11,369 nt of DNA, taken from positions 1 to 11,369 of the forward strand of contig NW_021827052.1 of assembly GCF_006345805.1 (NCBI RefSeq), given 5' to 3'. This stretch comes from Octopus sinensis (Eukaryota). The notes under the pieces are model-generated. The model had not been told where the DNA came from, made no database searches, and worked only from the letters and a program-made list of their open reading frames with translations. A program made the translations under genes and the position numbers. Of the stretch, positions 1 to 11,369 are shown one piece after another; the first letter of the stretch is position 1, and each line of letters opens with the position of its first letter.

Positions 1-3000
1 CCCTAGGTGTGAGAAATGGGGTGACTTGAGATTATAAATGAATTGCCTAATATTTTATGCAATTTTTCGGAGTTCCCTAGATGTGAGCATAGTGGGGTAC
101 TTGAGATTATGCAATAAATACGTAATAATTTATGCAATTTTTGGGAGCTCCCTAGATGTGAGCATATGCAGGTATTTGAGATTATGCAATAAATTGCGTA
201 TATATTATCCAATTTTGGAAGCTCCCTAGTGTGAGAAAATGGGGTTACTTGAGATTATAAATGATATGTATATTTTATGCAATTTTTCGGAGTTCCCTAG
301 ATGTGAGCATATGGGGTATTTGAGATTATATAATAAATTACGTAATATATTATGCACTTTTGGGAGGTCCCTAGATGTGAGCATGTGGGGGTATTTGAGA
401 TTATATAATAAATTACGTAATATATTATGCAATTTTGGGGGTCCCTAGATGCGTACATATGGGGGTATTTGAGAATATAATAAATTACGTATATATTATG
501 CAATTTGGGAGGTCCCTAGATGTGAGCATGTGCGGGTATTTGAGATTTATATAAATTACGTAATATATTATGCATTTTGGGAGGTCCCTAGATGTGTACA
601 TATGGGGGTACTTGAGATTATGTAATAAATTGCGTATTATATTATTCATTTTGGGAAGTCCCTAGATGTGAGCTATGGGGGTACTTGAGATTATGTAATA
701 AATTCGTAATATATTATTTATTTTGGGAGGTCCCTAAATTTGAGCATATGGGGTACGTGAGATTATGCAATAAATTACGTAATATTTTATGCAATTTTGG
801 GAGGTCCCTAGATGTGTACATATGGGGATACTTGAGATTATGCAATAAATTACGTAATATTTTATGCAATTTTGGGAGCTCCCTAGATGTGAGAAAATGG
901 GGTTACTTAAGATTATAAAATGAATTGCCTAATATTTTATGCATTTTTCGGAGTTCCCCTAGATGTGAGCATATGTGGGTACTTGAGATTATGCAATAAA
1001 TTAAGTAATATTTATGCAATTTTGGGAGCTCCCTAGATGTGAGCATATGCAGGTATTTGAGATATGCAATAAATTGGGTAATATATTATCCAATTTTGGA
1101 AGCTCCCTAGGTGTGAGAAAATGGTTACTTGAGATTATAAATGAATTGCCTAATATTTTATGCAATTTTTCGGAGTTCCCTAGATGTGTATGGGGGTATT
1201 TGAGATTATATAATAATTACGTAATATTATGCAATTTGGGGAGGTCCCTAAATTGAGCATATGGGGGTACGTGAGATTATGCAATAAATTACGTAATATT
1301 TTATGCAATTTTGGAGGTCCCTAGATGTGTACATATGGGGTACTTTGAGATATGCAATAAATTACGTAATATTTTATGCAATTTTGGGAGCTCCCTAGAT
1401 GTGAGCATATGCAGGTATTTGAGATTATGCAATAAATTGCGTAATATTTAATGCAATTTTGGGAGGTCCCTAGATGTGAGCATATGTGGGTACTTGAGAT
1501 TATGTAATAAATTGCGTATTATATTATTCATTTTGGGAAGTCCCTAGATGTGAGCATATGGGGGTACTTGAGATTATGCAATAAATTACGTAATATATTA
1601 TTTATTTTGGGAGCTCCCTAGATGTGAGCATATGGGGGTACTTGAGATTATGTAATAAATTGCGTAATATATTATTTATTTTGGGAGGTCCCTAAATTTG
1701 AGCATATGGGGGTACGTGAGATTATGCAATAAATTACGTAATATTTTATGCAATTTTGGGAGGTCCCTAGATGTGTACATATGGGGGTACTTGAGATTAT
1801 GCAATAAATTACGTAATATTTTATGCAATTTTGGGAGCTCGCTAGATGTGAGCATATGCAGGTATTTGAGATTATGCAATAAATTGCGTAATATTTAATG
1901 CAATTTTGGGAGGTCCCTAGATGTGAGCATATGTGGGTACTTGAGATTATGTAATAAATTGCGTATTATATTATTCATTTTGGGAAGTCCCTAGATGTGA
2001 GCATATGGGGGTACTTGAGATTATGCAATAAATTACGTAATATATTATGCAATTTTGGGAGGTCCCTAGATGTGAGCATATGGGGGTACTTGAGATTATG
2101 CAATAAATTACTTAATATTTCATGCAATTTTGGAAGCTCCCTAGATGTGAACATATGCAGGTACTTGAGATTATGCAATAAATTACGTAATATATTATGC
2201 AATTTTGGGAGGTCCCTAGATGTGAGCATATGTAGGTACTTGAGATTATGAAATAAATTACGTAATATTTTATGCAATTTTGGGAGCTCCCTAGATGTGA
2301 GCATATGTGGGTACTTGAGATTATGTAATAAATTGCGTAATATATTATTTATTTTGGGAGGTCCCTAATGTGAGCATATTGGGTACGTGAGATTATGAAT
2401 AAATTACGTATATATTATTTATTTTTGGAGGTCCCTAGATGTGAGCATATGTGGGTACTTGAGATTATGTAATAAATTACGTAATATATTATGCAATTTT
2501 GTGAGGTCCCTAGATGTGTACATATGCAGGTACTTGAGATTATGCAATAAATTACTTAATATTTCATGCAATTTTGGAAGCTCCCTAGATGTGTACATAT
2601 GCCGGTACTTGAGATTATGCAATAAATTACGTAATATATTATGCAATTTTGGGAGGTCCCAAGATGTGAGCATATGTAGGTACTTGAGATTATGTAATAA
2701 ATTGCGTATTATATTATTAATTTTGGGAAGTCCCTAGATGTGAGCATATGGGGGTATTTGAGATTATGTAATAAATTGCGTAATATATTATGCAATTTTG
2801 GGATGTCCCTAAATGTGAGCATATGGGGGTAGTTGAGATTATGCAATAAATTACGTAATATTTAATGCAATTTTGGGAGGTCCCTAGATGTGAGCATATG
2901 GGGGTACTTTAGATTATGTAATAAATTCCGTAATATTTAATGCAATTTTTGGAGTTCCCTAGATGTGAGCATATGTGGGTACTTGAGATTATGTAATAAA

Positions 3001-6000
3001 TTGCGCTATATATTATTTATTTTTGGAAGTCCCTCGATGTGAGCATATGGGGGTATTTGAGATTATGTAATAAATTCCGTAATATTTAATGCAATTTTGG
3101 GAGTTCCCTAGATGTGAGCATATATGGGTACTTGAGATTATGTAATAAATTGCGCTATATATTATTTATTTTTGGAAGTCCCTCGATGTGAGCATATGGG
3201 TGTATTTGAGATTATGTAATAAATTCCGTAATATATTATGCAATTTTGGGAGGTCGCTAGATGTGAGCATATGTGGGTGCTTGAGATTATTTAATAAATT
3301 CCGTTATATATTATTCATTTTGGGAAGTCCCTAGATGTGAGCATATGGGGGTACTTGAGATTATGCAATAAATTACGTAATATTTTATGCAATTTTGGGA
3401 GCTCCCTAGATGTGAGCATATGCAGGTATTTGAGATTATGCAATAAATTGCGTAATATATTATCCAATTTTGGAAGCTCCCTAGGTGTGAGAAAATGGGG
3501 TTACTTGAGATTATATAATAAATTCCGTAATATATTATGCAATTTTGGGAGGTCCCTAGATGTGTACATATGCGGGTACTTGAGATTATGCAATAAATTA
3601 CGTAATATATTATGCAATTTTGGGAGGTCCCTAGATGTGTACATATGCAGGTACTTGAGATTATGCAATAAATTACGTAATATATTATGCAATTTTGGGA
3701 GGTCCCAAGATGTGAGCATATGTAGGTACTTGAGATTATGAAATAAATTACGTAATATTTTATGCAATTTTGGGAGCTCCCTAGATGTGAGCATATGTGG
3801 GTACTTGAGATTATGTAATAAATTGCGTAATATATTATTTATTTTGGGAGGTCCCTAAATTTAGCATATGGGCTACGTGAGATTATGCAATAAATTACGT
3901 ATATATTATTTATTTTGGGAGGTCCCTAGATGTGAGCATATGTGGGTACTTGAGATTATGTAAAATTACGTAATATATTATGCAATTTTGAGAGGTCCCT
4001 AGATGTGAGCATATGTGGGTACTTGAGATTATGTAATAAATTACGTATATATTTGCAATTTTGGGAGGTCCCTAGATGTGTACATATGCGGGTACTTGAG
4101 ATTATTCAATAAATTACGTAATATATTATGCAATTTTGGGAGTCCCTAGATGTGTACATATGCAGGTACTTGAGATTATGCAATAAATTACGTATATATT
4201 ATGCAATTTGGGAGGTCCCAGATGTGAACATATGTAGGTACTTGAGATTATGAAATAAATTACGTAATATTTTATGCAATTTTGGGAGCTCCCTAGATGT
4301 GAGCATATGTGGGTACTTGAGATTATGTAATAAATTGCGTAATATATTATTTATTTTGGGAGGTCCCTAAATTTAAGCATATTGGGCTACGTGAGATTAT
4401 GCAATAAATTACGTAATATATTATTTATTTTGGGAGGTCCCTAGATGTGAGCATATGTGGGTACTTGAGATTATGTAATAAATTACGTAATATATTATGC
4501 AATTTTGGGAGGTCCCTAGATGTGAGCATATGTGGGTACTTGAGATTATGTAATAAATTACGTAATATATTATGCAATTTTGTGAGGTCCCTAGATGTGT
4601 ACATATGCAGGTACTTGAGATTATGCAATAAATTACGTAATATATTATGCAATTTTGGGAGGTCCCAAGATGTGAGCATATGTAGGTACTTGAGATTATG
4701 AAATAAATTACGTAATATTTTATGCAATTTTGGGAGCTCCCTAGATGTGAGCATATGTGGGTACTTGAGATTATGTAATAAATTGCGTAATATATTATTT
4801 ATTTTGGGAGGTCCCTAAATTTAAGCATATTGGGCTACGTGAGATTATGCAATAAATTACGTAATATATTATTTATTTTGGGAGGTCCCTAGATGTGAGC
4901 ATATGTGGGTACTTGAGATTATGTAAAAATTACGTAATATATTATGCAATTTTGTGAGGTCCCTAGATGTGAGCATATGTGGGTACTTGAGATTATGTAA
5001 TAAATTCCGTAATATATTATGCAATTTTGGGAGGTCCCTAGATGTGAGCATATGTGGGTACTTGAGATTATGCAATAAATTACTTAATATTTCATGCAAT
5101 TTTGGAAGCTCCCTAGATGTGTACATATGCAGGTACTTGAGATTATGCAATAAATTACGTAATATATTATGCAATTTTGGGAGGTCCCAAGATGTGAGTA
5201 TATTTAGGTACTTGAGATTATGTAATAAATTGCGTAATATATTATGCAATTTTGGGATGTCCCTAAATGTGAGCATATGGGGGTAGTTGAGATTATGCAA
5301 TAAATTACGTAATATTTAATGCAATTTTGGGAGGTCCCTAGATGTGAGCATATGGGGGTACTTTAGATTATGTAATAAATTCCGTAATATTTAATGCAAT
5401 TTTGGGAGTTCCCTAGATGTGAGCATATGTGGGTACTTGAGATTATGTAATAAATTGCGCTATATATTATTTATTTTTGGAAGTCCCTCGATGTGAGTAT
5501 ATGGGGGTATTTGAGATTATGTAATAAATTCCGTAATATTTAATGCAATTTTGGGAGTTCACTAGATGTGAGCATATATGGGTACTTGACATTATGTAAT
5601 AAATTGCGCTATATATTATTTATTTTTGGAAGTCCCTCGATGTGAGCATATGTGTGTATTTGAGATTATGTAATAAATTCCGTAATATATTATGCAATTT
5701 TGGGAGGTCGCGAGATGTCAGCATATGTGGGTGCTTGAGATTATTTAATAAATTCCGTTATATATTATTCATTTTGGGAAGTCCCTAGATGTGAGCATAT
5801 GGGGGTGCTTGAGATTATTTAATAAATTCCGTTATATATTATTCATTTTGGGAAGTCCCTAGATGTGAGCATATGCAGGTATTTGAGATTATGCAATAAA
5901 TTGCGTAATATATTATGCAATTTTGGAAGCTCCCTAGGTGTGAGAAAATGGGGTTACTTGAGATTATAAAATGAATTGCCTAATATTTTATGCAATTTTT

Positions 6001-8884
6001 CGGAGTTCCCTAGATGTGAGCATATGTGGGTACTTGAGATTATGCAATAAATTACGTAATATTTTATGCAATTTTGGGAGCTCCCTAGATGTGAGCATAT
6101 GCAGGTATTTGAGATTATGCAATAAATTGCGTAATATATATCCAATTTTGGAAGCTCTCTAGGTGTGAGAAAATGGGGTTACTTGAGATTATAAAATGAA
6201 TTGGCCTAATTTTATGCAATTTTTCGGAGTTCCCTAGATTTATGGGGGGTATTTGAGATTATATAATATTACGTAATATATTATGCAATTATAGGAGGTC
6301 CCTAGATGTGAGCATGTGCGGGTATTTGAGATTATATAATAAATTACGTAATATATTATGCATTTTGGGAGTCCCTAGATGTGTACATATGGGGGTACTT
6401 GAGATTATGTAATAAATTGCGTATTATATTATTCATTTTGGGAAGTCCCTTGATGTGAGCATATGGGGTTACTTGAGATTATAAAATGAATTGCCTAATA
6501 TTTTATGCAATTTTTCGGAGTTCCCTAGATGTGAGCATATGTGGGTACTTGAGATTATGCAATAAATTAAGTAATATTTATGCAATTTTGGGAGCTCTAG
6601 ATGTGAGCATATGCAGGTATTTGAGATTATGCAATAAATTGGGTAAATATTATCCAATTTTGGAAGCTCCCTAGGTGTGAGAAAATGGGGTTACTTGAGA
6701 TTATAAAATGAATTGCCTAATATTTTATGCAATTTTTCGGAGTTCCCTAGATGTGAGCATATGTGGGTACTTGAGATTATGCAATAAATTACGTAATATT
6801 TTATGCAATTTTGGGAGGTCCCTAGATGTGTACATATGGGGGTACTTGAGATTATGCAATAAATTACGTAATATTTTATGCAATTTTGGGAGCTCCCTAG
6901 ATGTGTACATATGCAGGTATTTGAGATTATGCAATAAATTGCGTAATATTTAATGCAATTTTGGGAGGTCCCTAGATGTGAGCATATGTGGGTACTTGAG
7001 ATTATGTAATAAATTGCGTAATATATTATTTATTTTGGGAGGTCCCTAAATTTGAGCATATGGGGGTACGTGAGATTATGCAATAAATTACGTAATATTT
7101 TATGGAATTTTGGGAGGTCCCTAGATGTGTACATATGGGGGTACTTGAGATTATGCAATAAATTACGTAATATTTTATGCAATTTTGGGAGCTCCCTAAA
7201 TGTGAGAAAATGGGGTTACTTGAGATTATGCAATAAATTACGTAATATTTTATGCAATTTTGGGAGCTCCCTAAATGTGAGAAAATGGGGTTACTTGAGA
7301 TTATAAAATGAATTGCCTAATATTTTATGCAATTTTCGGAGTTCCCTAGATGTGAGCATATGTGGGTACTTGAGATTATGCAATAAATTACGTAATATTT
7401 CATGCATTTTGGGAGTTCCCTAGATGTGAGCATATGCAGGATTTGAGATTATGCAATAAATTGCGTAATATATTATCCTATTTGGAAGCTCCCTAGGTGT
7501 GAGAAAATGGGGTTACTTGAGATTATAAAATGAATTGCCTAATATTTTATGCAATTTTTCGGAGTTCCCTAGATGTGAGCATATGGGGGTATTTGAGATT
7601 ATATAATAAATTACGTAATATATTATGCAATTTTGGGAGGTCCCTAGATGTGAGCATGTGGGGGTATTTGAGATTATATAATAAATTACGTAATATATTA
7701 TGCAATTTTGGGAGGTCCCTAGATGTGTACATATGGGGGTACTTGAGATTATGCAATTAATTACCTAATATTTTATGCAATTTTGGGAGCTCCCTAGATG
7801 TGAGCATATGCAGGTACGTGAGATTATGCAATAAATTACGTAATATTTTATGCAATTTTGGGAGGTCCCTAGATGTGTACATATGGGGGTACTTGAGATT
7901 ATGCAATAAATTACGTAATATTTTATGCAATTTTGGGAGCTCCCTAGATGTGAGCATATGCAGGTATTTGAGATTATGCAATAAATTGCGTAATATATTA
8001 TGCAATTTTGGAAGCTCCCTAGGTGTGAGAAAATGGGGTTACTTGAGATTATATAATAAATTACGTAAGGGAGGTCCCTAGATGTGTACATATGGGGGTA
8101 CTTGAGATTATGCAATAAATTACGTAATATTTTATGCAATTTTGGGAGCTCCCTAGATGTGAGCATATGCAGGTATTTGAGATTATGCAATAAATTGCGT
8201 AATATATTATGCAATTTTGGAAGCTCCCTAGGTGTGAGAAAATGGGGTTACTTGAGATTATAAAATGAATTGCCTAATATTTTATGCAATTTTTCGGAGT
8301 TCCCTAGATGTGAGCATATGTGGGTACTTGAGATTATGCAATAAATTACGTAATATTTTATGCAATTTTGGGAGCTCCCTAGATGTGAGCATATGCAGGT
8401 ATTTGAGATTATGCAATAAATTGCGTAATATATTATCCAATTTTGGAAGCTCCCTAGGTGGAGAAAATGGGGTTACTGAGATTATAAAATGAATTGCCTA
8501 ATATTTTATGCAATTTTTCCGAGTTCCCTAGATGTGAGCATATGGGGGTATTTGAGATTATATAATAAATTACGTAATATATTATGCAATTTTGGGAGGT
8601 CCCTAGATGTGAGCATGTGGGGGTATTTGAGATTATATAATAAATTACGTAATATATTATGCAATTTTGGGAGGTCCCTAGATGCGTGCATATGGGGGTA
8701 CTTGAGATTATGCAATAAATTACGTAATATTTTATGCAATTTTGGGAGCTCCCTAGATGTGAGCATATGCAGGTATTTGAGATTATGCAATAAATTGCGT
8801 AATATTTAATGCAATTTTGGGAGGTCCCTAGATGTGAGCATATGGGGGTACTTGAGATTATGTAATAAATTGCGTAATATATTA
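1..8884. repeat. Satellite DNA array, 74/75-bp monomer, ~118 copies
   Basis: Consensus CCCTAGATGTGAGCATATGGGGGTACTTGAGATTATGCAATAAATTACGTAATATATTATGCAATTTTGGGAGGT (75 bp). CCCTAG anchors at 1989 and 2064 are 75 bp apart; monomers with TTATTTATTTTGGG are 74 bp (4365 to 4439). The 25-aa periodicity of the ORF track matches. The array extends past the left edge. Confidence 0.98.
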
Positions 8885-8910
8885 TGTCGCGACCCACGCT
8901 GGCGACCATC
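8885..8910 (+). repeat. Terminal inverted repeat (26 bp) TGTCGCGACCCACGCTGGCGACCATC
   Basis: Exact reverse complement of 9964-9989; GC-rich against an AT-rich background; identical sequence starts copy 2 at 10126. Confidence 0.97.
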
Positions 8911-8977
8911 CCACGCTGGCGACCAGAGCGACCTTCATTGTTGACAAGATTGACATGGCGACCTACATAGTTTGACA
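8889..8977 (+). repeat. Subterminal repeats at the left end (probable transposase-binding sites)
   Basis: CCCACGCTGGCGACCA at 8893-8908 and 8910-8925; GCGACC at 8889, 8902, 8919, 8928, 8958; TTGACA at 8941, 8950, 8972. Binding function is inferred. Confidence 0.75.
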
Positions 8978-9201
8978 CTAATTACTGACTAAAGATAATT
9001 GCTGAAAAATCAAAAAACTTAACATTTTTTTATCTCTATTCATAGTAACTATTTTGTAATTCGAACTAAATGTTTGTTAGGAAAGACAACTAACCATTAA
9101 TCTGTATTTAGACATTATATTTTTCCCTTTTCTTCATATGGGGATTCAAATCTGTGTAGCTTCAATGACGGATTCGTCCCACAATCTTTTATTATTCGTT
9201 T

Positions 9202-9228
9202 CTAAAAATAAATATATCGTAAATTTAC
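9202..9228 (-). other. Putative 27-nt mini-intron 4
   Basis: GTAAATTTACGATATATTTATTTTTAG: GTAAAT donor, T-rich tract and TAG. Removal gives DELN|ETNNK. Splice sites are conserved in copy 2 (10452-10478). Confidence 0.62.
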
Positions 9229-9270
9229 CATTAAGTTCATCTTCGACAAACAATGCCTCGTTATTTTCAT

Positions 9271-9294
9271 CTAAATTATAAATAAGATTATAAC
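9271..9294 (-). other. Putative 24-nt mini-intron 3
   Basis: GTTATAATCTTATTTATAATTTAG: GT...TTTAG, very AT-rich. Removal gives EIP|DENNE. The length is 3n and it has no stop, so frame logic cannot confirm it. Confidence 0.55.
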
Positions 9295-9558
9295 CTGGTA
9301 TTTCATAAATCACAGTGTTAATTCCAGAAATACCCATAAACTTTTGAAGCGGGTCTCATTGATCGCCGAGTGGTGTGTCGTATTATAGGAAAAAGTTACT
9401 ATTTAGTTAAAGCGCTCAATTACACCCTAATTTATTTCAAATTTATTCCTCGCATAGTTGAGCCATAAGTTGGTTTTTAAATTCCAACCCGTTGTCCGTT
9501 TGCAAGATCTGACAATATCCAATTTGATAAAACAATTTTTGGAATTTATTCACCACTT

Positions 9559-9582
9559 CTTCAATTAAATTTCAAGTCTTAC
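9559..9582 (-). other. Putative 24-nt spliceosomal mini-intron 2
   Basis: GTAAGACTTGAAATTTAATTGAAG: GTAAG donor, AAG acceptor, in-frame TGA inside. Removal gives TCT G|AA GTG = KNKTASEVVNKF, matching the integrase K-x-K-T-A-x-E-V pattern. Confidence 0.75.
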
Positions 9583-9767
9583 CAGAAGCAGTTTTATTTT
9601 TTAAAGATTTGCAGGACGTTTTACAGTGAAATAGAATTCACTGCACTTTTTCTGAAGCTTTCGTATTCCCTAGTGGGATTCTTGGTGAATGGAGAATGTT
9701 AGTGTCCTCATCTCCATTTCAAATGACCAATTTGTGTTTTTGGTTATTCTCGTCCTTTAGATAAAGA

Positions 9768-9793
9768 CTATGAGTTAGGAGTCGCAAATATAC
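9768..9793 (-). other. Putative 26-nt spliceosomal mini-intron 1
   Basis: GTATATTTGCGACTCCTAACTCATAG: GT...TAG with a CTAAC branch-like motif. Removal restores the frame and gives GAT CG|T CTT TAT = FIIINDRLYLK. Confidence 0.75.
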
Positions 9794-9929
9794 CGATCAT
9801 TAATAATGATAAATTGAGTCGCTTTTTTCATGCTAACATATTTTGAGAGAAACCATAATTTTTTTTCTAAAATGACGCTAAACCATTTCTTAAAATGAAT
9901 TTTTTCCGGTTTAAATTAAATAACTAATC

Positions 9930-9970
9930 ACCTGTCAAACTGAAGGTCATAACCTGTCAAACTGATGGTC
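9930..9970 (-). repeat. Subterminal 19-bp direct repeats at the right end
   Basis: ACCTGTCAAACTGAAGGTC (9930-9948) and ACCTGTCAAACTGATGGTC (9952-9970), 22-bp period. They contain TGTCAA, the inverse of the left-end TTGACA motif. Confidence 0.8.
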
Positions 9971-9989
9971 GCCAGCGTGGGTCGCGACA
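9964..9989 (-). repeat. Terminal inverted repeat (26 bp) GATGGTCGCCAGCGTGGGTCGCGACA
   Basis: Exact reverse complement of 8885-8910, followed directly by the TATTA duplication. Confidence 0.97.
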
Positions 9990-10125
9990 TATTATTTATT
10001 TTGGGAGGTCCCTAAATTTGAGCATATGGAGGTACGTGAGATTATGCAATAAATTGTGTAATATATTCTTCATTTTGAGAAGTCCCTAAATTTGAGCATA
10101 TTTGGGTACTTGAGATTATGTAATA
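9990..10125. repeat. Continuation of the 74/75-bp satellite (~1.8 more-diverged monomers)
   Basis: Resumes the interrupted monomer (TATTATTTATTTTGGGAGGTCCCTAAATTTGAGC). Carries variants not noticed in the main array (ATGGAGGTAC, TTGTGTAAT, TTGAGAAGTCC). Confidence 0.93.
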
Positions 10126-10525
10126 TGTCGCGACCCACGCTGGCGACCATCCCACGCTGGCGACCAGAGCGACCTTCATTGTTGACAAGATTGACAGGGT
10201 TTGACATTAACTACATAGTTTGACATTAATTACTGACTAAAGATAATTGCTAAAAATCAAAAAACTTAACATTTTTTTATCTCTATTCATAGTAACTATT
10301 TCGTAATTCGAACTAAATGTTTGTTGGGAAAGACAACTAACCATTAATCTGTATTTAGACATTATTATTTTTACTTTTCTTTCTTCATATGGGGATTCAA
10401 ATCTGTGCAGCTTCAATGACGGATTCGTCCCACAATCTTTATTATTCGTTTCTAAAAATAAATACATCGTAAATTTACCATTAAGTTCATCTTCGACAAA
10501 CGATGCCTCGTTATTTTCATCTAAA
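10126..10525 (-). mobile_element. Second, truncated copy of the same transposon (one TIR plus ~400 bp)
   Basis: Starts with the identical TIR and aligns to 8885-9275 with 6 isolated transitions and several small indels. Different flank (GTAATA|TGT). Homology stops at CATCTAAA; the other end is not in the window. Confidence 0.9.
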
Positions 10526-10544
10526 AAAAAAAAAAAAAAAAAAA
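10523..10544 (+). repeat. Poly(A) tract, 22 nt
   Basis: A22 directly at the breakpoint of transposon copy 2; the homologous site in copy 1 has only AAA (9273-9275). Confidence 0.9.
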
Positions 10545-10571
10545 TCTAAATCTTAATAATAAAATGGTATG

Positions 10572-10604
10572 GTGTGTGTCTGTCTGTCTGTCTGTCTGTG
10601 TGTG
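10572..10604 (+). repeat. Compound microsatellite (GT)3(GTCT)5(GT)n
   Basis: GTGTGT GTCTGTCTGTCTGTCTGTCT GTGTGTG; GTCT x5 at 10578-10597. Confidence 0.92.
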
Positions 10605-10626: not shown

Positions 10627-11369
10627 TACGATGTCCTCGACTTACATGATGAGGTCCTTAAAACCTTCCGCCAAAAAAAAATTGAAAGAACTTTTCTGCA
10701 TTTTGGTTAAAATGAACAACTACGATGTCCTCGACTTACATGATGAAGTCCTTAAAACCTTCCCCCCAAAAAAAATTAAAAAAAATTTTCTGCATTTTGG
10801 TTAAAATGAACAACTACGATGTCCTCGACTTACATGATGAAGTCCTTAAAACCTTCCCCCTAAAAAAATTAAAAAAAATTTTCTGCATTTTGGTTAAAAT
10901 GAACAACTACAATGTCCTCGACTTACATGATGAAGTCCTTAAAACCTTCCCCCCAAAAAAATTAAAAAAAATTTTCTGCATTTTGGTTAAAATGAACAAC
11001 TACGATGTCCTCGACTTACATGATGAAGTCCTTAAAACCTTCCCCCCAAAAAAATTAAAAAAAAATTTCTGCATTTTGGTTAAAATGAACAACTACGGTG
11101 TCCTCGACTTACATGATGAAGTCCTTAAAACCTTCCCCCCAAAAAAAATTAAAAAAAATTTTCTGCATTTTGGTTAAAATGAACAACTACGATGTCCTCG
11201 ACTTACATGATGAAGTCCTTAAAACCTTCCCCCCAAAAAAAATAAAAAAAAATTCTGCATTTTGGTTAAAATGAACAACTACGGGTCCTCGACTTACATG
11301 ATGAAGTCCTTAAAACCTTCCCCCCAAAAAAAATTAAAAAAAATTTTCTGCATTTTGGTTAAAATGAAC
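10627..11369. repeat. Tandem repeat, 92-94-bp unit, 8 copies (continues past the window end)
   Basis: Units start (TACGATGTCCTCGACTTACATGATGA...) at 10627, 10721, 10815, 10908, 11001, 11094, 11188, 11280. Length variation is mostly in the C and A homopolymers. Unrelated to the 75-bp satellite. Confidence 0.97.

Follow-up and report, generated by a model that had tools for sequence, protein, structure and literature searches.

A dead Ginger2/TDD-type transposon copy in a satellite array, with two short segments that may be relics of mini-introns

The window analysed here is a stretch of 11,369 nucleotides, positions 1 to 11,369 of contig NW_021827052.1. Within a long array of a 75-bp satellite it holds a 1,105-bp transposon copy, which we call element B, and beyond it a shorter copy of the same element, copy A. 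Element B carries the broken remnant of an integrase-type (rve/DDE) transposase gene on the minus strand. An earlier note on this DNA had read the remnant as a gene split by four spliceosomal mini-introns, with a fifth candidate downstream. All five GT...AG segments are present where it had placed them, with lengths of 26, 24, 24, 27 and 29 nt, and we number them 1 to 5 in the direction of the gene. They are not alike: compared with the protein family, segments 1 and 2 are additional sequence, with GT-AG ends and a TAAYT motif, whereas segments 3 and 4 have GT-AG ends at chance level only, and segment 5 is coding sequence.

Element B, its transposase remnant and its relatives

Element B is bounded by terminal inverted repeats (TIRs) and by a target-site duplication (TSD) of 5 bp. 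The two TIR arms, taken as 8879-8910 and 9964-9995, are 97% complementary; the TIR is 26-32 nt long, its sequence is TGTCGCGACCCACGCTGGCGACC, and both ends (8885 and 9989) begin TGTCG, or TGTCGCG when read further. Joining the flanks of the element to recreate the empty site yields continuous 75-bp satellite. The TIRs, the TSD and the microsporidian relatives described below support the identification, already made in the earlier note, of an integrase-type transposase remnant of a TIR DNA transposon.

Table 1. Features of element B and of the surrounding window, with coordinates in the window; 5' and 3' refer to the element.
Feature	Position	Strand	Remarks
Element B, internally deleted non-autonomous Ginger2/TDD-type TIR transposon copy	8885-9989	-	1,105 bp; TIRs, ordered profile matches, empty site
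TSD TATTA, 5' side of the element	9990-9994
5' TIR	9964-9989	-	26 nt; terminus TGTCGCGACCCACGCTGGCGACCATC
N-terminal coding block SKYVSMKKATQFIIINDR	9794-9846	-	profile positions ~33-50
Segment 1, candidate mini-intron, GTATATTTGCGACTCCTAACTCATAG	9768-9793	-	26 nt; extra relative to all homologs; frame shift of 2; TAACT 3 nt before AG
Coding remnant (R)LYLKDENNQKHKLVI	9722-9767	-	profile positions ~51-66
Net 11-nt deletion	~9721	-	first frame resumes
H-H half of H2C2 zinc finger, EMEMRTLTFSIHQESH*GIRKLQKKCSEFYFTVKR	9616-9720	-	in-frame stop; domain at profile positions 33-103
Deletion of ~70 codons	between 9616 and 9607	-	removes C-x2-C and first catalytic D
Coding remnant SLKNKTAS(E)	9583-9607	-
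Segment 2, candidate mini-intron, GTAAGACTTGAAATTTAATTGAAG	9559-9582	-	24 nt; extra relative to all homologs; in-frame TGA
rve core remnant EVVNKFQKLFYQIGYCQILQTDNGLEFKNQLMAQLCEE	9443-9558	-	second catalytic D (DNG); 44 bits to family profile
GVIERFN* (catalytic E region) and VTFSYNTTHHSAINETRFKSL	9337-9425	-	in-frame deletions of ~10 codons before and ~25 between
Segment 3, candidate, GTTATAATCTTATTTATAATTTAG	9271-9294	-	24 nt; variable linker; in frame, stop-free
Segment 4, candidate, GTAAATTTACGATATATTTATTTTTAG	9202-9228	-	27 nt; in frame, stop-free; shared with copy A (10452-10478)
C-terminal domain remnant KDCGTNPSLKLHRFESPYEE...IVTMNRDKK	9040-9198	-	broken in B by an additional A (~9189) and a 4-nt deletion
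Segment 5, candidate	9066-9094	-	29 nt; coding sequence of C-terminal domain
3' TIR	8885-8910	-	26 nt
TSD TATTA, 3' side of the element	8880-8884
75-bp satellite array	1-8879	.	~119 units; insertion site of element B
75-bp satellite, two further units	9995-10120	.	between copies B and A
Flank TAATA of copy A	10121-10125
Copy A, 3' 400 bp of the same element	10126-10525	-	94-98% identity to matching part of B
TIR of copy A	10126-10151
93-bp satellite	10627-11369		8 units, 96% identical

The subterminal repeats of element B (8893-8925 and 9927-9970) differ between the two ends: a 17-bp unit, CCCACGCTGGCGACCAT, occurs twice in a row at the 3' end but not at the other, and next to the 5' TIR lies a direct repeat of 22 bp (..CCTGTCAAACTGA.GGTC). 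These repeats may be binding sites for the transposase. The 23-nt GC-rich core of the TIR has one exact match among metagenome contigs, at 6743-6765 of JAESGM010000053.1. That contig is bacterial with 70% GC, the match lies inside a long open reading frame (ORF), and the sequence is otherwise dissimilar; the match is a coincidence in a very large collection. No match to the TIR was found among viral contigs.

We mapped the three reading frames of element B onto a profile built from 13 homologs. The frame was resolved in this way at two places where it had been read differently before. Downstream of HKLVI, the true frame returns to that of MKKATQ and reads the H-H half of the zinc finger. The tail that the earlier note had ended at LWDESVIEATQI* is the product of the 1-nt insertion in B; copy A and the homologs continue KDCGTNPSLKLHRFESPYEE. 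One frameshift follows the rve core and another follows the GVIERFN region, after which come a short variable linker and the C-terminal domain, which copy A preserves intact as an ORF at 10237-10467. A candidate for the missing half of the zinc finger, the string CKTSCK, was rejected as C-x2-C: the profile puts the true frame elsewhere, and C-x2-C is deleted. With stops, frameshifts and at least five deletions in the profile mapping, element B cannot make transposase and is a dead deletion derivative.

As query for a full HMMER scan we used the longest stop-free piece of the remnant, 42 aa encoded on the minus strand at 9443-9571. It matched two proteins, P0004 (458 aa) and P0002 (231 aa). When the spliced reconstruction was used instead, Pfam gave an rve match that stayed below threshold, and a word-indexed protein search gave no match. 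Searches started from P0004 and P0002 found the nearest relatives in Dictyocoela roeselum, D. muelleri, Nosema granulosis and Pseudoloma neurophilia, together with unnamed Logan and JGI proteins. The closest relatives are single-exon transposases of Microsporidia, 420-460 aa long, in which a weak H2C2 zinc finger is combined with an rve core (PF00665 plus weak PF17921/PF09337) and reverse transcriptase, protease and gag domains are absent. Remoter matches bear the names SCAND3-like and KRBA2-like. The 120 best relatives include no myxozoan, dicyemid or ciliate proteins. In a neighbour-joining tree the window remnant falls inside the microsporidian group, beside P0002 and the Dictyocoela sequences, with 52% identity to P0002 and 45% to P0004. 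The earlier note had named Microsporidia, where the family sits, among the lineages with such tiny introns. It had further suggested that the transposon was adapted to a tiny-intron spliceosome; none of the relatives examined has introns, and hence no adaptation of this kind is conserved.

The microsporidian proteins from D. roeselum (P0004), D. muelleri (P0012 and P0014), N. granulosis (P0015) and P. neurophilia (P0021) share 38-52% amino-acid identity with the remnant and are colinear with it across all surviving blocks. They differ from it in two ways: their genes are uninterrupted, whereas element B has GT-AG inserts of 26 and 24 nt, and element B has lost roughly half of the protein, the first catalytic D with it. 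A complete family member is present in D. muelleri (contig L002, 3783-5598). This element is 1.8 kb long, has 213-bp TIRs that start TGTCGCG, is flanked by TATTA on both sides and contains an uninterrupted ORF of 451 codons. In public records P0004, P0012, P0014 and P0015 are called 'Gag-Pol polyprotein' or 'Retrovirus-related Pol polyprotein'. These proteins are the sole ORF of 1.8-kb TIR transposons, and because the features of the family match those of the Ginger2/TDD superfamily, the public name is a misnomer.

Set against the published description of the Ginger2/TDD superfamily, the features of this family point to a cut-and-paste DNA transposon of that type. Members of that superfamily (TDD-4 and TDD-5 in Dictyostelium, Ginger2 in animals, and the source of SCAND3 and KRBA2) likewise encode H2C2 and the rve DDE core together, in one small ORF. 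They are described as having TGTNR termini and an AT-rich target, with a 5-bp TSD in TDD-4/5 (PMC2836005). The TGTCG termini of element B fit TGTNR, its target is AT-rich, and its TSD has the length seen in TDD-4/5. One report derives SCAND3 and KRBA2 from Ginger2 (PMC3575427). There are differences too: animal Ginger2 elements have a 4-bp TSD in RTATAY, as against the 5-bp TATTA of element B, and the TIRs of element B are short beside those of its D. muelleri relative (26-32 against 213 nt). Ginger elements have been mentioned in passing in microsporidia (PMC5751038). Element B is, by these features, a further member of Ginger2/TDD, from a microsporidian clade that was already public under wrong names. 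The related Ginger1 elements of Hydra, Aplysia and aphid carry one to four canonical introns and so offer a precedent for integrase-type DNA transposons with GT-AG introns of the host type (PMC2836005). Unlike the family of element B, however, they have YPYY and GPY/F motifs, 4-bp TSDs of the CCGG type and extra protease domains, and their introns are of ordinary size.

The five GT...AG segments

Segments 1 and 2 interrupt conserved parts of the transposase. At both sites all 13 homologs are contiguous and gap-free, reading FILIxxxLYLKD at the first and PLKxKSxxEV at the second. Excision of segment 1 removes a frameshift and excision of segment 2 removes an in-frame TGA, as the earlier note had said, and the profile score rises in both cases. 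To locate the inserts without reference to splice signals, we removed 0 to 45 nt from any start and scored each product against the 13-homolog profile. The optimum at site 1 was exactly 26 nt, with the score rising from 4.0 to 22.7 bits; eight placements scored at most 2 bits below the best, among them the GT..AG placement (9793-9768). At site 2 the optimum was exactly 24 nt, with a rise from 48.1 to about 59 bits, and one of the six placements within 2 bits of the best is GT..AG (9582-9559). GT and AG account for about 5% of dinucleotides each, and the chance of finding GT-AG at both inserts is about 0.02 x 0.016 = 3e-4.

The two segments also share an internal feature. Each has a TAAYT motif 3-5 nt ahead of the AG, arranged as TAACT-CAT-AG in segment 1 and TAATT-GA-AG in segment 2. 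Sites of the pattern GT..TAAYT N{0,4} AG with a length of 20-34 nt occur four times on the coding strand, against 0.75 expected (P ~0.01). At the 5' end, comparison with GTA[AG]GT gives two mismatches for segment 1 (GTATAT), one for segment 2 (GTAAGA), three for segment 3 (GTTATA) and one for segment 4 (GTAAAT). Segments 1 and 2 are the sole insertions in a copy otherwise shaped by deletions. We considered tandem duplication and filler DNA as sources of the inserts and rejected both: the longest match elsewhere was 8-11 nt. The translation of segment 1, YICDS, resembles the neighbouring LYLKD, with a likeness at the DNA level no greater than expected by chance.

In size and signals, segments 1 and 2 resemble the introns of Microsporidia. 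Introns of Encephalitozoon cuniculi measure 22-76 nt (PMC3629993) and those of Hamiltosporidium average 28 bp (PMC10542269). The branch site is CTAAYTT in E. cuniculi (PMC2483917), and a published search expression for such introns is GTA[AG]GT..TAATT N{0,4} AG (PMC3486916), which segment 2 fits with one mismatch. The likeness thus extends to length (24-26 nt), GT-AG ends and a TAAYT a few nucleotides from the AG. Introns of the same size class are found in myxobolid Myxozoa and in Dicyema, where the median is 22-27 bp, the signals are reduced to GTa...AG and genome GC is near 29% (PMC13644364). The segments share with them the minimal GTa...AG signals. The TAAYT-AG layout, though, is of the microsporidian or yeast-like type, and myxobolids have a weak run of A instead. 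Mikrocytid introns (16-17 nt, PMC10245619) are excluded by size.

Taken together, these observations suggest that segments 1 and 2 are probably what is left of real mini-introns, which the autonomous parent of element B would have gained in this lineage.

Segments 3 and 4 present a less clear picture. Both lie in the linker, which differs freely in length and sequence from one homolog to another, and the GT..AG pairs 22-30 nt apart in this linker are exactly these two segments. Their excision changes the profile score by 1-3 bits, and semi-global alignments to six homolog tails gave changes of inconsistent sign. The earlier note had called them extremely AT-rich, which they are: their GC content is 12-15%, against 33% in the flanks. 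Segment 3 ends TAATT-T-AG, and segment 4 has no TAAYT motif. At the start of segment 4, GGT AAA TTT (part of ELNGKF) is similar to the family motif LNxKY, and TIYLF in this segment is similar to SKYDF; both resemblances are weak and involve AT-rich translation. Segment 4 leans towards coding, and its first codons, GKF, may belong to the LNxKY motif.

Segment 5, the fifth candidate, is coding and not an intron. In copy A the ORF runs uninterrupted across it, colinear with the C-terminus of the homologs, and excision would destroy the frame.

The second copy and the surrounding satellites

Copies A and B have the same orientation and lie two satellite units apart. Copy A adjoins its TAATA flank at a different position of the satellite unit from element B, which marks it as an independent insertion. 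The two copies would thus be separate insertions of one deletion derivative, two satellite units apart. Two independent insertions with the same linker structure would in turn mean that this deletion derivative was mobilised in trans.

The 5' end of copy A breaks off no more than 5 nt from the position equivalent to the 3' end of segment 3 in B (region 10520-10603). Beyond the truncation point the plus strand reads A(22) and then (TGTC)n; this may be a deletion junction, a retroposed antisense transcript or a coincidence.

All three family insertions that we inspected, namely element B, copy A and the D. muelleri element (3788-3792 and 5589-5593 of L002), lie in the pentamer TATTA or its complement TAATA. 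This suggests that the family has a sequence-specific target, perhaps with a preference for the 75-bp satellite.

The 75-bp satellite has a higher-order periodicity of 150/225 bp and a strong skew of G over C on the plus strand, of +0.37. It is unrelated to the 93-bp satellite at the other end of the window, from which copy A is separated by the A(22) run and the (TGTC)n microsatellite, and neither satellite found a match among genome contigs. GC content is about 33% throughout the window. Scans of the window for tRNA genes and against Rfam gave no matches, and the window contains no host gene.

Weighing the explanations, and what mini-introns would mean

Judging by sequence, we consider it reasonably probable that element B, a cut-and-paste transposon copy now dead and internally deleted, preserves in segments 1 and 2 the relics of short spliceosomal introns such as Microsporidia have. 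The autonomous parent would have acquired these introns in this lineage, each with a GTA 5' site and with TAAYT as branch site, 3-5 nt ahead of the AG, and both would need to be spliced out to yield transposase. A deletion derivative of that parent would then have been mobilised in trans by an autonomous partner, as the two insertions suggest. Given the distribution of the family, the host is most likely a microsporidian; an animal that acquired the element horizontally, or a different parasite with tiny introns such as a myxobolid, is a less likely host.

Several observations weigh against this explanation. The coding strand of element B holds 25 GT..AG pairs at a spacing of 22-30 nt, as against 25.4 +/- 4.4 in dinucleotide shuffles. 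With such pairs at chance density, the case for introns rests on a segment being extra relative to the protein family. One of the four matches to the GT..TAAYT N{0,4} AG pattern lies inside the conserved GVIERFN codons, so an intron-like pattern can arise by chance; this look-alike, GTGTAATTGAGCGCTTTAACTAAATAG (9399-9425, minus strand), has the form GT..TAACT..AG and a length of 25-27 nt, yet it encodes GVIERFN. Segments 1 and 2 are seen in element B alone, copy A comprising the 3' part. The relatives, broken copies included, all lack inserts at sites 1 and 2, and the broken copies from Dictyocoela and from a JGI metagenome carry simple frameshifts only, with no mini-inserts. If the introns are real, they are specific to the lineage of the window. 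The known microsporidian introns are few, and most of them sit at the 5' end of a ribosomal protein gene, whereas segments 1 and 2 would be recent gains at internal positions of a transposase gene; and the microsporidian 5' site is a strict GTAAGT (PMC2483917, PMC3486916), whereas segment 1 has GTATAT.

A rival explanation is that segments 1 and 2 are ordinary insertions in a decaying pseudogene, never spliced, whose GT-AG ends and TAAYT motifs are coincidental. The host might then be, for example, an arthropod that received the transposon horizontally from a microsporidian. Large satellite arrays are more typical of animals than of described microsporidian genomes, and the heavy damage to the copy, the intronless relatives, the chance density of GT-AG pairs and the intron-like string within conserved coding sequence all fit this account. 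Transposons are also reported to have been exchanged horizontally between microsporidia and animals (PMC4202319). Against it stand the low joint probability of GT-AG ends at inserts defined by the profile, the common size of 24-26 nt and the TAAYT motif in both, their position as sole insertions among deletions, and the failure to find a donor sequence for filler DNA. We regard such chance insertion as unlikely, though as an explanation to be taken seriously. A wider role for introns, with all four or five segments spliced in an intron-rich host with tiny introns (a myxobolid, a dicyemid or a ciliate of the Paramecium type) to which the transposon had adapted, is improbable. It would draw on the short introns of myxobolids and Dicyema, on the AT-richness of segments 3 and 4 relative to their flanks and on the TAATT-T-AG end of segment 3. 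But segment 5 is coding; segments 3 and 4 are multiples of three in length, stop-free, placed in a variable linker and worth 1-3 bits; ELNGKF runs across the 5' end of segment 4 in the manner of LNxKY; and the clade is microsporidian. A ciliate code was rejected as well: TGA accounts for three of the remnant's five in-frame stops, and such a code does not rescue it. That the remnant is instead the integrase part of a long terminal repeat retrotransposon or of a retrovirus-like pol seems hardly credible. The name 'Gag-Pol polyprotein' in the source of the relatives would favour it, as would the fact that rve and H2C2 are common to retroelement integrases, but the repeats are inverted rather than direct and come with a TSD, and the D. 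muelleri relative is 1.8 kb long with a single ORF and without reverse transcriptase, protease or gag.

The earlier proposal of four mini-introns thus probably holds for two of them. The stronger, combined claim, of a microsporidian host in which segments 1 and 2, perhaps with segment 3, are functional mini-introns that a transposase gene has recently gained, is one that we put forward tentatively and would not expect to hold in full. In the literature we found no report of a mini-intron gain in a microsporidian transposon.

Should the segments have been inserted by chance, the locus holds no more than an ordinary transposon in decay within a satellite. If they are real introns in a microsporidian, they would show intron creation in a textbook group of intron and spliceosome loss. 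No earlier gain of an intron would then be on record for this lineage, which is known essentially for losing them, and it would mean that the reduced microsporidian spliceosome accepts new substrates beyond ribosomal protein genes. Short microsporidian introns are spliced inefficiently, at about 20-55%, so introns of this kind could act as a built-in throttle on the dosage of transposase. Annotation based on ORFs would miss or truncate such transposases. The family could also be used to date and study intron gains, by comparing copies with introns and copies without them.

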